DNA from: Octopus sinensis
Taxonomy: Eukaryota
Length of the DNA stretch: 64,000 nt
Assembly: GCF_006345805.1 (NCBI RefSeq)
Contig: NC_043001.1
Location: forward strand, 39,556,001-39,620,000
Direction: 5' to 3'
Of this stretch, positions 26,001 through 32,000 are shown piece by piece. The stretch's first letter is position 1. Each line of letters begins with the position of its first letter. The translations under genes and the position numbers were made by a program. The notes beneath the pieces were generated by a model. That model saw only the letters and a list, made by a program, of their open reading frames with translations, did no database searches and was not told the origin of the DNA.

Positions 26001-29000
26001 TGGTTTGTGAGGACTGTACAAGCCATGTAAAGAGTTTCAGCTAGCAAGATGAAAGTCAGCAATGAGTTCAGTGTGTAGGTAGGGATTTATAAGGTTTCAG
26101 TTCTCAACCTCCATCTGTTTGTTGTAGTCTTGCAAGTCACAGCTGGGATGCTTAAAATATTGGGTGGTGTGGGTTATGATCTTATCACCTGCATCGTAAA
26201 TCAGGTAGTTCATGAAGGAGTCGTATCCAATGACAGATGTAACAGCACCATAGTCAACTGCTACAAGGGGAAAGGTGATGCTTTAGGTAGAAATAACTAC
26301 AGGGGTATCAAATTATTGGATCAGGTGATGAAAGTTACAGAGAGGGTCATAGCCAGACTAATTAGACAGAGAGTTAGCCTAGATTAGATGCAGTTTGGTT
26401 TTGTGCCAGGCAGAAGCACCACTGATGCTATATAAGGCACCTGCAGGAGAAATATCTAATCAAAGATAAACCTCTGTACTTGGCTTTTGTTGACTTGTAG
26501 AAAGCCTTTGACAGGGTCCCCCAATCCCTTATCTGGTGGTCAATGAGGAAACTGGGGATAGATGAGAGGCTGGTAAGAGCTGTACAAGTCCTGTACAGGG
26601 ATGCTGTCGGTAAGGTGAGGGTTGGCAATGAGTATAGTGAAGAATTCCAAGTAGATGTAGTCCTCCAGGTAATAACAGAGGAATTCAAGACAGGATGCTC
26701 CTGGGAGCTCCTCTGTGCTGAGTCACTATCAGAACTAGAGGAGAGGTTTCAGGTGTGGAAGCAACGTCTAGAATCGAAGGGCCTTAGGGTTAACCTAGCA
26801 AAAACCAAAGTCTTAGTAAGTAGGATGGCTGTCAAATTGTTATCCCCTTCAGGTAGATGGCCCTGCTCGATCTGTAGAAAAGGTGTGGGTAGAAACTCCA
26901 TATGATGTACCCACTGTAAGCTATAGACACATAAGAGGTGTAGCAATATCAAAGGTAGGTTAACCAGGAAAATAGTCTTTGCATGTGGCAGATGCATAGG
27001 GGCAATAAACACTGAAGATATAGAGAAAACAGATTCCATTACATGCCACGGGGAGAAACTAGAAGTAGTTGATAGCTTCTGCTACCTTGGCAATCAAGTC
27101 TGTAGTGGGGATGTTTGCTCTGAGAGTATAGTGAGTAAGAATAGTCTGGGCAAAGTTCAGGAAGCTCCTAACTCTGCCGGCAACTAAGGGCCTCTTACTC
27201 AGGATGAAAGATAGATTGGATGGTGCATGTGTGTCTGAACTGCCATGCTGCATGGCAGTGAAACATGGGCCATCAATACTGAGGCCATGCGTAGGCTTGT
27301 ATGATCCACTGGATGTGTAATGTCAGTGTGTATACACGACAGAATGTAAGCACCCTGATAGAAAAGTTGGGCATAAGAAGCATCACATGTGGTGTGCAAG
27401 AGAGGCATCTACACTGGTATGGCCATGCGTTACATATGAATGAGGACAGCTGTGTGAGGAAGTGCCACTCCCTAACTGTGGAAGGAACCTATGGAAGAGG
27501 TAGACCCAAGAAGCAATGGGATGAGGTGGTGAAGCATGACCTTCAAACATTGGGCCACACAGAGGCAATGACAGGAGACTGAGACCTTTGGAGATATGCT
27601 GTGTTTGAGAAGACCTGGCAACTAAAGAGAGATTGCAGCCATGCATGTCCAGCTCTGTTAAGAATACCCCTGATGTGTTGGGCAATATGATATGCTTGAG
27701 AAAACCAGTCAAATCAAGTAAAACCAATATTGTAGCTGTGGCCAGTGCCCCCTAACTGGCTCCCATGCCAGTGGTATGTAAAAAGCACCATCCGAACATG
27801 GACGATGCTAGTACCCCCCACTTGGCTCTTGCACTGATGGCACGTAAAAAGCACTATCTGAACATGGTCAATGCCAGGCCTGCCTGACTGGCTCCTGTGC
27901 CGGGGGCATGTAAAAAGCACCCACTACACTCTCAGAGTGGTTGGCATTAGGAAGGGCATCCAAATGTAGAAACATTGCCACATCAGATTGGAGCCTGGTG
28001 CAGCCACTGGCTCTCCAGACCTCAGTCAAACTGTCCAACTCATGCCAGCATGGAAAACGAACGTTAAACAATGATGATGATGATGATATATATATTAATT
28101 ATATATGTAATTCAGAAATAAAATACTATTTGCTAATGACATTAATTATACTTACTCTTTAGCTTGGATAAATTAGTAGCATCTGCACTTACTGCATCTT
28201 TAAAAAAGAAAATGAAAAATCATTTATTGCTTGTATGAGCACTGCATTGTATCTGAAATGAATTATTTCTAGGACATATAGAAAAATATTTATGATATGC
28301 TTTTAGTTAAGCTATACACAAAAAATTAACAGAGACCCAGAATGTGTTAGTGAAAGATTTATTTAGTTGAACACATGAGGGCAACAGCCACCTGTCAACT
28401 CCCTAGCTAGTCTGCAGCAAAGTAACTGTATACAGTTCATATGTCATAAATCCTTGGGCAATGCCCTACTGTTGACTGTCATTGGAACTGGGAATGTGTT
28501 TTAACTACCCTGCCCATGCGTGTGGTGACTTGGCTCTTTGGTGTTTGTTCCTTGCCAAGGGTTGGTGTGATTTGCCTGGAGTGGCCCCTGTTTAGTGGTT
28601 GAGCTTATTTGGAAAGTGTTGTCAATATCAAGATACACCAGTTTCATCCTAACTATAGAAACAATGTCATGTCGTCTGCCAATTAGGAGTTGGAATAATT
28701 TGTCTTCTGGACATTTGACTTCATATGGATCATTGTAGGGTGACTGGAGGGATTTTCATCGTGTGTCACATAGAATAAAAACAAGGTTAGCCAAGCAGAA
28801 GTCATTTGGTACAGATGATCTAGGTGTATGTTGACATGGGAATAAGGTACAACTAGACCACACTTGTCTTTCAGTTGCGCAAGGTACCTTTTGAAATCTG
28901 GGTCTGACTTCATGTTTGGAATGAACTCTCCTAGCACTGTAAAAGAGGCACCATACACCATTTCAGCAGAAGAAGTGTTAAGATGTTCCTTTTGGGTGGT

Positions 29001-32000
29001 GGGGATTCCCAGCATCACTAATAGAAGTGGATCAATTCAGTTGGGCCAGTTAAGTCTGGTTGTCAGGAATTCCTTCAAGCCGCAGTGAAATCTCTCCACT
29101 AACCCATTGGCCTATGGATGATGGTAGGCTATTGTGCACTTCATTGTGATTCCAAAAAGGTCATTCCACAGCTTTTAGGTGAACTGTGGACCCCAACAGA
29201 TGAGATGTTGTCTGGGACACCAAAATGAGCAACCCAGTTTTTGATGGAGGATCAGCTGGCTTCTTATGTTTCTGTACTTTGGAGAGAGATAGCCTCAGGC
29301 CAATGAGTATAGCAGTCTACCAAAGTCAGTGGGTACGAGCAATCTTGTGAAGGTGGTAGGAGGCCAACAAGGTCAATGTTGATGTGGCTGAAATGAGCCT
29401 GTGGTGGTTTATAGTTGCCGAAGATGCAGTAAGTGCAGATGCTACTAATTTATCCAAGCCAAAGAGTAAGTATAATTAATGTCATTAGCAAATAGTATTT
29501 TATTTCTGAATTACATATATAATTGGTGTATTGATTGACCGAGGCTTGTTGACAGGGGATGCAGTTCTTGCTCCACTCCCAAATTTGCTTGGCCATACCG
29601 TGCCAGATAAATTTGTACCATGTAGCTCTAGTATCTGAGTAGGACAGTCTATGAATGATGTTGAAAACTTTCCTGCACCAGCCTAATGGGATGATTGGTC
29701 ATGGTTTCCCAGTGGATACATCACACAGTAGAGTTGTAACAAAGTGTACATCCTGCAAGGAAAGGAACATGATGGCAATGTGGTAGGGCCTTTTCTCGTC
29801 ATCTGTCTGTTGGACTGCAGCCATAGCCTCATAATGCAGGCCTTCCTTATTGGGGCTTGGTAGTTGTGAGAGCAGGTAGGGTCATGAGAGAGTGCATTTG
29901 CAACTGAGTTGCTTTTCTAGTTATGTGTTGGATGCCTGTGGTGTACTCAGAAATGGCCAACAGCTGTTGTTACTAGTGTGCAGACAAAGGTGCTGAGAGC
30001 TTGCTCATAGCAAAGGTGAGTGGTTTGTAGTCTGTGAACACTGTAAATGTGCGGCCTTCAAGAAAATAGTGAAAGTAGCGGACAGCTAGATGGACAACCA
30101 GCAGTTCCCTGTCAAAAGCATTGTATTTTTGTTCAGAAGGCCATAGCTGTCTACTGAAGAAGTCAAGTGGTCACCACTGACCATTGATGTGTTGTTCCAA
30201 AATTCCACCAGTGACATTGCAACTCATTTTTACTGCTGAGTGAGCTAGAGCAATGTGAAATAAAGCACCTTGCTCAAGAACACAACCTCATAATTGTAAG
30301 TCCAGCACCAAAACCACTGAGTCATGTGCCTTCACTGTGTGTGTTTACGTATATATAGAGAGATAGCTAGACAGACATGTTAGTGAGACAGGGGTTGAAT
30401 GTAGAGAACATGTAAAGACTAGAAAGGAATGAAACTAGTACACTTATGGGATGTACAATGTGTGTGTGTATGTACAACAAAGTGTAAATGTGAGAAGAGA
30501 AAAATTGGGCATAAAAGGAATCAGATGTAATGTGCAAGAGATGAGATTATTTGGTATGGTTATGTGAAATGTATGGATGAGTATGGCTACTCTAAGAAGT
30601 GCCAATCACTTAATGTCACACAATATCCTGACATGGCTGTTGTCAGGATACTGATCATTACAGAAGAAATCAAAAAGCACTGGGATAATCGAGGATTTAT
30701 TGTGCTTCAGAAGTGCTGTCACAGTGAAAGCGAAATCCTAAAAGCATTATGATTATGCCTATAAACTCACTGGCCCCTGCCCCTGTACCCAATCTGTCCA
30801 TGTTCAGCCTTCCTTTGTCTTTAACTGCCTAACATTCCTCCATCACTCTTCTAACTATAGCACTATTCAACAAATTCAGCACTATTCAGCATATGTGAGC
30901 AGAATTGTACATATTTCCTTTCCTTTTTGTGGTACCAATTATCCTTTTCCCTGGAACCAATTCCTTTTAAAATCTGCCCCTAATTCTCAATATCATCCTT
31001 TCCTACATTATTTTCCACTGATCACTCTTTTCTTTGCCTCCAGTTATCTCTCACTTTCTGCTGAGCAACATCTTATGACTGCCATATCTCATCTTTAATA
31101 ATGTCTCATATCTTCTATCATTCTCAACACCCTCTCACACCTGCTGTTGACACCCACTTCCATGTTAGCCACTCACTATATCTACCTTTACATTCTTATG
31201 ACCTCTATCTTTGTCAATGTACATCTCTCTCACCTTCTCCCCTCTCCACACATCATTTCCCTATTTTTCATCTATCTACAGATTTATTATACTGCTGCTC
31301 TCCACCCTTTCCAATTGTCTGTCCATGTTTCCTCTTATATTTACCTTCTTTTACTTTAAGAAAACATTTTAACAACACATCACTGCCATCTTTATCACTT
31401 GTTTTAGCTACTCTCACCCACCAATGTATATTGCAGCATAACCTTGTATCTCCACAACAAAACTTCTATGCCTGTCTCTCTATCATACTTTAGTCTTTCA
31501 ATACATGGAATAAACCCACATCCTTCTGTACTATATCTCCATTCAGTTGAGGTGGTGGTGGTGGTGGTGGGGGGGGGATTCTTTGTCTTGAAAGTTACTA
31601 GGCAACCTCACTAATGCCAGTGCCATGAAAAAGTACCCAACACACCCTGTAAAAAGGTTGTTATTTGGAAGTGCAGACAACTATAAAAAACATGCAAGGC
31701 AGACATTAGGACTCGGTGCAGTCTTCCAGCTCATTGGATCCAGTTGAACTATCCAACCCATGCTAGCATGAGAGATGGATATTAAATGATGGTGATGATG
31801 ATGGGATGATGACAGTGATTTTTATTCAACTATGTCAAGGGACTTGTTATATAAGGCACTCACATTTGCTAAATGCTAAAACGATGATAGAGACATAGAC
31901 ATTATCATGCATGTCAGGAAATTCTGTTTTACAATAAAAGTTGAGTTAATGTCAAGCAAACTGACCCAGAAGGCTCCTTCATTGGTGGCAAGAGCCTTTG

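Follow-up and report, generated by a model that had tools for sequence, protein, structure and literature searches.

A probable templated inverted insertion of 104 nt in a Ty3/Gypsy integrase remnant of an octopod genome

Within the window, the whole 64-kb stretch of DNA analysed here, the integrase of a degenerate Ty3/Gypsy element is interrupted by a 104-nt inverted copy of sequence that lies 1.2 kb away. This copy is likely a recent mutational scar, formed when a short deletion was combined with an inverted templated insertion, either through MMBIR/FoSTeS-type switching or through polymerase-theta/SDSA repair. As such, it is an ordinary structural mutation of a known kind, and sequence comparison does not support linking it to an exon. 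The two arms of the inverted repeat are as follows:

28097..28200, plus strand: source arm, unique and AT-rich (25% GC), in DNA flanking the Gypsy remnant
29421..29524, minus strand: inserted inverted copy, matching 28097-28200 at 103/104 positions

When the window sequence was compared with itself, we recovered the match reported in an earlier note on this DNA, with 28097-28200 being the reverse complement of 29421-29524 at all but one of the 104 positions. The sole mismatch is at 28161, where the source has A and the copy has G. Identity ends sharply on both sides of the arms, which are separated by a loop of 1220 nt. A match of this quality over such a length cannot be due to chance, and the divergence of the arms is 1/104 (95% CI 0.02-5.2%). 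The 104-nt unit is present in only two copies in the window, and no further copies were found in 67 kb of other octopus DNA (L001-L003), making 131 kb of octopus DNA screened altogether. Other BLAST matches to the arm are short, AT-rich chance matches, and a 22-mer from the arm gave 0 matches in a metagenome scan. Folding of the minus-strand RNA yields an uninterrupted 104-bp stem in both the MFE and the centroid structure, in which the mismatch becomes a G-U pair, and the computed energy of the arm duplex is about -163 kcal/mol.

The recipient of the insertion consists of two parts, one on either side of the inserted copy:

29525..30206, minus strand: upstream part of the Ty3/Gypsy pol remnant (RNase H to integrase H2C2 zinc finger), decayed and interrupted by in-frame stops
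28298..29420, minus strand: downstream part of the Ty3/Gypsy pol remnant (integrase core, pol C-terminus and a short terminal LTR-like segment), ending ...AGCTTAACTAAAAGCA at 28298

On the minus strand, the Pfam domains follow the order of Ty3/Gypsy pol, from RNase H through integrase H2C2 to rve, and the same domains are found in 64 homologs of the remnant. The upstream part matches RT_RNaseH (E=3.8e-16) and Integrase_H2C2 (E=1e-4) and has 78.8% nucleotide identity to positions 5013-5713 of the O. sinensis Gypsy copy L003. The downstream part matches rve (E=4e-4) and is 78.2% identical to L003 5724-6508 and 74% identical to L002 6040-6771. The insertion site falls in the linker between the Integrase_H2C2 zinc finger and the rve catalytic domain, and the break in the integrase frame is seen just as the earlier note had described it (QQASVNQYT / insert / GNYKPPQ). 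Together with the ambiguous base 29420, the copy adds 105 nt (35 codons), replacing approximately 12 nt of Gypsy sequence. Judged by its sequence, the element is a dead remnant: some 350 codons contain at least nine stops and a frameshift, no reading frame is intact, and both the 5' part and the 5' LTR are missing; only its 3' terminal segment is common to L002 and L003.

The state of the site before the insertion can be approached through related elements. The insert is absent from all 17 aligned homologous integrases, and in the protein alignment four residues are gone beside it. The Gypsy copy L003 is collinear with the remnant on either side and has 12 nt (AAAACACCCCTT) at the position of the insert, reading ...CAGACC-AAAACACCCCTT-GGCAACTAT... 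where the window reads ...TACACC-(104 nt)-C-GGCAACTAT... Taking this paralogous copy as a guide to the ancestral state, we infer that approximately 11-12 nt were replaced by the insert. When the flanks were compared with L003, the insert showed neither a target-site duplication nor a tail of poly(A) or microsatellite type. The entry junction has a microhomology of 2 nt (AA). At the exit junction the overlap would be 0-3 nt according to which ancestral bases are assumed, and base 29420 is unaccounted for. Because the site is empty in L003 and in the 17 homologs, and because the arms are only 1% apart as opposed to the heavy decay of the remnant in stops and frameshift, the inverted insertion is far younger than the Gypsy remnant, in agreement with the earlier claim that it post-dates the element.

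The source arm, flanked by the following features, is 97 nt past the 3' end of the Gypsy element and at a distance of 9 nt from the (ATG)n tail that closes a LINE:

28201..28297, no strand assigned: unique, AT-rich DNA separating the source arm from the Gypsy 3' end, containing the pyrimidine tract and AG that the earlier note took as an acceptor
26130..28088, plus strand: LINE truncated at its 5' end, with a 3' region resembling a SINE, tandem units of 66 nt and an (ATG)n tail, abutting the source arm

The homology shared by the three copies of the Gypsy family stops at 28298, and since the copies diverge completely beyond this point, the source arm is, by sequence comparison, outside the element. 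The idea that it is part of the Gypsy LTR, duplicated by aberrant reverse transcription, was rejected, as family homology ends 97 nt before the arm and a divergence of 1% misfits the age of the remnant. The arms were likewise rejected as the TIRs of a transposon or MITE, given that Gypsy sequence is continuous across the outer boundary of the right arm (29420 inside, 29525 outside) and that there is no target-site duplication and no other copy in the 131 kb screened. Membership of the source arm in a local 1.2-kb repeat family (copies at 4.7k, 11k, 13k, 19k and 23k) was dismissed on negative nhmmer bit scores. More broadly, the surroundings of the arms are transposon debris: Pfam searches with ten ORFs from 1-42k returned transposon-type domains only, or nothing. 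No Rfam family matched anywhere in the window. Within L001, a search for the O. sinensis counterpart of the arm's site found none.

A plausible course of events would begin with fork stalling or a double-strand break that exposes a DNA 3' end inside the already dead Gypsy integrase. Having left its template, the freed 3' end would pair, over a microhomology of a few bases, with the opposite strand at a place 1.2 kb off that directly follows the Gypsy 3' terminus, and 104 nt would be copied from there. Synthesis would then rejoin the original template about 12 nt further along, leaving a deletion-insertion that carries nearby sequence in reverse-complement form. Repair by polymerase theta or SDSA with one out-of-place synthesis step would be an equally possible route. 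The switching itself and the correctness of the assembly at this locus are presumed, and the insertion is most likely neutral, neutrality being an assumption here.

Several described processes resemble this reconstruction. MMB-TI is defined as an insertion that lies close to its template in inverted orientation and shows microhomology at its junctions (PMC8421209). The insert in the window likewise corresponds to nearby sequence in reverse complement; a few bases were lost with it, microhomology is present at the entry junction at least, and both a tail and a target-site duplication are lacking, although the events that define MMB-TI are mostly shorter and closer (within about 100 bp in yeast) than the 104 nt and 1.2 kb observed here (PMC8421209). 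The four-point template-switch model, in which the reverse complement of one fragment takes the place of another fragment (PMC5453318), fits in that this is the kind of replacement we observe. The switches described under that model, however, are confined to a single fork region, cover tens of bases and leave tight hairpins, in contrast to the loop of 1220 nt in the window (PMC5453318; PMC8794818), and long-range switches were explicitly left unmodelled by its authors (PMC5453318; PMC8794818). Insertions arising by foldback or polymerase theta share the inverted templated synthesis from a resected 3' end and the combined scar of deletion and insertion, but their tracts are mostly about 5-34 bp and their templates adjoin the break, whereas here 104 nt were taken from 1.2 kb away (PMC11724301, PMC7165422). 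The earlier note had proposed a templated repair insertion that created a cis-antisense exon element; its templated and inverted character is borne out by the 103/104 match and the replacement of about 12 nt, whereas the exon element is not supported.

That proposal had treated part of the source arm as a host exon and had placed both arms in a single pre-mRNA. The features that bear on it are listed below:

28156..28197, minus strand: proposed 42-nt exon, with splice motifs only, open in one frame (AVSADATNLSKLK)
52692..52793, minus strand: transmembrane exon of the Ig/TM gene, ortholog of LOC118763568, phase 1-1
47657..47675, minus strand: micro-exon of the Ig/TM gene, true ortholog of an 18-nt O. 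sinensis micro-exon, with exon and flanks 85% identical over 130 nt
42692..42761, minus strand: putative final coding exon of the Ig/TM gene, containing the stop codon (42694-42692)

This minus-strand Ig/TM gene, the ortholog of O. sinensis LOC118763568, is the one host gene that can be recognised in the window. Synteny suggests that its coding sequence ends at 42692; the similarity of the last exon is weak (7/19 residues, tblastn E=0.78), and the exon lies between collinear anchors and restores the frame. Read along the minus strand, the putative stop precedes the inserted copy by 13.2 kb, and no called gene was found in the O. sinensis DNA that lies downstream of LOC118763568 and aligns to 42.5k-33.8k of the window. 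With the one identifiable host gene ending near 42.69k, which on the minus strand is about 13 kb ahead of the arms, and syntenic O. sinensis DNA devoid of a called gene, synteny places the arms outside the Ig/TM gene, and their inclusion in the same pre-mRNA is not supported. A 15/15 match over the donor of the proposed exon to the O. sinensis 18-nt micro-exon had suggested orthology; this match is coincidental, and 28156-28197 was rejected as the ortholog in favour of 47657-47675.

If 28156-28197 were nonetheless a genuine exon, whether as an alternative 3' exon of the Ig/TM gene, in some other gene or in a lncRNA, the inverted copy would mask the exon and its donor and create an ADAR substrate, that is, a de novo ECS. 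The motifs themselves are good: on the minus strand, a pyrimidine tract (15 of 17 positions before the AG) is followed by AG, 42 nt, and then GTAAGT, with the donor AGA/GTAAGT equal to the consensus. Moreover, the only open frame fits the phase-1 end of the transmembrane exon, 42 nt keeps the phase, and the minus-strand stem of 104 bp, at about -163 kcal/mol, would be set in a lineage where ADAR recoding is exceptionally abundant, the coleoids (PMC8382921). Comparable motifs, however, define 14 candidates in the window with 12 distinct donors, roughly a dozen of them of equal quality, so that although the splice motifs named in the earlier note exist, their use as a host exon does not follow from them. 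The agreement in frame has a prior of one in three, and the donor match to the micro-exon is the coincidence described above. No database protein or transcript-derived ORF supports 28156-28197, the window's exons are contained in no database protein, and no homology, annotation or conservation was found for the candidate, which has transposon debris all round and sits far beyond the end of Ig/TM coding. We therefore regard a genuine exon with a masking antisense copy as very unlikely, and use of 28156-28197 as an exon is not supported by the sequence.

Two other accounts concern the insert itself. It is unlikely that the 104-nt patch is an assembly artefact from a chimeric read, polishing or gap filling, even though exact look-ups of the junction ORF (48 aa) and of an adjacent ORF (111 aa) gave no independent contig in which the junction could be seen a second time. 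The window is free of N and of gaps, and the clean junctions, the replacement of about 12 nt and the single mismatch to the source resemble those of a biological deletion-insertion that has begun to diverge. Missed-adapter artefacts produce adjacent palindromes, unlike an isolated patch 1.2 kb from its source. Still less probable is a different source or route, in which both arms derive independently from a dispersed repeat that has escaped recognition or from a third locus, or in which an RNA copy was reverse-transcribed by a retrotransposon enzyme and captured at a break. Further copies were screened for in 131 kb of octopus DNA. The window is rich in LINE and Gypsy reverse transcriptases, and the single difference between the arms is A to G on the plus strand, although one transition is uninformative on editing. 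On the other side, 99% identity at a distance of 1.2 kb is expected from local templating and would be a coincidence for dispersed copies, no third copy was found in the window, L001-L003 or the metagenome scan, and the lack of a tail and of a target-site duplication together with the deleted bases argues against target-primed reverse transcription.

A templated inverted insertion thus remains the likely reading, and its only built-in consequence is a foldable 104-bp duplex, which any transcript crossing both arms, from either strand, could form. Events of this type are known to generate long RNA hairpins in a single step (PMC8794818). Effects on exon masking and ADAR are speculation because the exon premise is unverified. 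The site in the window resembles intronic ECS and inverted-repeat ADAR substrates (on how editing and splicing interact, see PMC9105294) in having an antisense copy within about 1 kb that is able to form a long duplex, whereas intronic ECS are defined by a transcribed, edited exon and this site is known from sequence alone and lies, by synteny, outside the neighbouring gene. It is extremely unlikely that a real unannotated exon (an alternative 3' Ig/TM exon or part of a lncRNA) was given a 104-bp antisense partner in one template-switch step; if true, a newborn editing-site complementary sequence or splice mask would have been caught just after its origin in a coleoid genome.

The insertion is a clean and datable example of its kind, as the recipient is a coding remnant and a paralog can thus show the replaced bases. 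Given heavy ADAR editing, young inverted templated insertions within expressed genes could be informative genome-wide. Finally, we observe two longer and tighter palindromes in the same 64-kb window; with these two further young inverted duplications, the process is recurrent in this genome, which hints that it is frequent in the octopod genome.

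The stretch at 28097-28200 (the source arm) matches the reverse complement of 29421-29524 (the insert) at 103 of 104 positions, with identity lost sharply at both ends and the sole difference at 28161, where the source arm has A and the copy G. These are the only two copies of the arm when it is searched against the window with BLAST, the runner-up being an AT-rich match of 43 nt at 81%, and searching another 67 kb of octopus DNA added none. The inverted match, which an earlier note had described, is thus confirmed, and a chance origin is impossible.

The insert interrupts the following element, recognized by its Pfam domains:

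~30206 down to 28298, minus strand: decayed Ty3/Gypsy pol remnant

The domains run in the order RT_RNaseH (E = 3.8e-16), Integrase_H2C2 (E = 1e-4) and rve (E = 4e-4). Queried against a database after removal of the insert, the integrase part of the remnant yields 64 homologs with the same domains. When aligned with 17 homologs, the window has a long extra block that is unique to it, located in the linker from the zinc-finger CX2C to the catalytic core, and is ~4 residues short next to this block. Some 350 codons of the remnant are broken by at least 9 in-frame stops and one or more frameshifts, and it was dead long before the insertion event.

The state of the site before insertion can be inferred from a paralog, L003 (an Octopus sinensis copy from the same Gypsy family), rather than from an ortholog. 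L003 aligns with window 30206-29523 and 29419-28638 at 78-79% nucleotide identity, and the break in the alignment falls exactly at the insert. In the Gypsy sense, L003 reads ...CAGACC AAAACACCCCTT GGCAACTAT..., and the window has ...TACACC [104 nt] C GGCAACTAT..., from which it appears that ~11-12 nt were lost and 104-105 nt gained. The same comparison reveals neither a target-site duplication nor a tail at the insert. At one junction there is a 2-nt microhomology, the insert's first bases, AA, being the next two Gypsy bases. The proposal that this is a templated insertion post-dating the Gypsy element is borne out. L003 itself contains a 230-nt direct repeat (3415-3653 and 6507-6734, 77% identical), the copies of which are only ~2.9 kb apart and bracket the RNase H-integrase region; an internally deleted element with short LTRs probably accounts for them.

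Homology among three Gypsy copies (the window, L003 and L002 of O. bimaculoides) stops at window 28298, with the common terminal motif ...AGCTTAAC(T)AAA(A)GCA, and past this point no similarity among them remains. This places the source arm 97 nt beyond the element, in its flanking DNA, so that the arm is not part of an LTR. Only 9 nt separate the left end of the arm from the (ATG)n tail of a truncated LINE (26130-28088), a nearness that we treat as coincidence. Within the SINE-like 3' region of this LINE, 27741-27921 holds three tandem 66-nt units that are 67-80% identical, and tails related to its (ATG)n tail, which ends at 28088, recur at 31741-31803 and elsewhere. Membership of the source arm in the 1.2-kb repeat family occupying 4.7-24k is undetectable. 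Copies of this ~1.2-kb unit, all in the same orientation, are:

4743-5970
10963-12241
13005-14340
19142-20364
23086-23648

With at least five copies within about 4743-24276 (86-95% identical) and LINE fragments between them, the array has the appearance of a composite unit amplified segmentally or in tandem.

Here a short stretch has been exchanged for the reverse complement of neighbouring sequence, with microhomology, which is the published hallmark of microhomology-mediated templated insertions (PMC8421209) and likewise the outcome of the four-point template-switch model (PMC5453318); foldback or polymerase-theta synthesis at breaks yields similar inverted tracts (PMC11724301, PMC7165422). 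A strand extending through the Gypsy sequence would have jumped onto the other strand 1.2 kb back, used 28200 to 28097 as its template, and then gone back. With its 104 nt and a template 1.2 kb away, this insertion exceeds typical examples in length and distance but is the same in kind. Because the arms differ at 1/104 positions (95% CI 0.02-5.2%) while the remnant is heavily decayed, the insertion dates to a small, latest part of the time for which the remnant has been in place. That the 104-nt patch is instead an assembly artefact is improbable, as its deletion-insertion structure is clean and a single base has diverged. The insertion adds a new case to a known class of mutation and is most likely neutral. 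A look-up of junction-spanning ORFs gave no record, and a metagenome scan for the arm sequence and an Rfam scan of the window were both empty.

The only recognisable host gene in the window is a minus-strand Ig-domain/transmembrane (Ig/TM) gene, whose Ig exon at 56.4-56.7k has 68% protein identity to O. sinensis LOC118763568. The O. sinensis locus of the latter, L001, runs collinear with window 59.6k down to 33.8k, and three further exons can be placed:

52793-52692, minus strand: TM exon
47675-47657, minus strand: ortholog of the O. sinensis 18-nt micro-exon (85% over 130 nt, flanks included)
42761-42692, minus strand: putative last coding exon (7/19 residues match, frame restored)

The micro-exon is 19 nt in the window (47657-47675) versus 18 nt in L001 (30662-30679), and the last-exon acceptor is offset by 1 nt (window 42692-42761 versus L001 32072-32130), so that the cytoplasmic-tail frame would be restored. 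Together, the weak protein similarity and synteny suggest a compensated frame change between species. With these assignments, the stop codon precedes the repeat by ~13 kb, and no gene is called in the O. sinensis ortholog of window 42.5k-33.8k. An Ig-like exon (ORF 60856-61461, minus strand) is followed immediately by a long, imperfect CTG/CAG-type trinucleotide tract (60900-61380) that reads as poly-Leu, poly-Ser or poly-Ala depending on frame.

The earlier note had taken the copied piece to include a host exon in the same pre-mRNA (28156-28197, minus strand, 42 nt). This proposed exon has a pyrimidine tract and AG before it and GTAAGT after it. A simple scan of the window for an AG, GTAAGT, 13 or more pyrimidines out of 17, an open frame and a length of 25-150 nt returns 14 comparable candidates with 12 distinct donors, and such motifs alone are thus weak evidence for an exon. 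The fit of its sole open frame to the TM exon phase is a 1-in-3 coincidence. A 15-nt exact match between its donor and the O. sinensis micro-exon, which had hinted that the two were orthologous, is also coincidental, as the ortholog is 47675-47657. No protein in a 5.8-billion-sequence collection contains the window's exons, and hence neither annotation nor transcript-derived ORFs lend support. The exon is unproven and unlikely; with like motifs so frequent and the repeat so far past the Ig/TM stop codon, the claim and all that was built on it are unsupported.

When 28080-29540 is folded as minus-strand RNA, the 104-bp stem is complete in both the MFE and centroid structures, the arm mismatch turns into a G-U pair, and the computed duplex energy is ~-163 kcal/mol. 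If transcribed, the predicted duplex could in principle be an ADAR or Dicer substrate. Such potential is not special here, as the window contains two longer, much tighter palindromes:

7125-7379 / 7395-7649: arms of 255 nt, 249/255 identical, 15-nt spacer
59756-59944 / 59991-60179: 424 nt in all, arms of 189 nt, 183/189 identical, 46-nt spacer

The insertion is mainly of use as a tidy illustration and otherwise of low interest, and together with these palindromes it hints at frequent inverted duplication in this genome. The 59756-60179 palindrome has no second instance in the window and is absent from the orthologous L001. It lies between two Ig exons of the Ig/TM gene and, being within a real intron, is a far better candidate for intronic dsRNA than the reported pair. 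The 7125-7649 palindrome, a second young one, has a single-arm relative at 20611-20846 (79%), which suggests that one repeat copy was inverted-duplicated in place.
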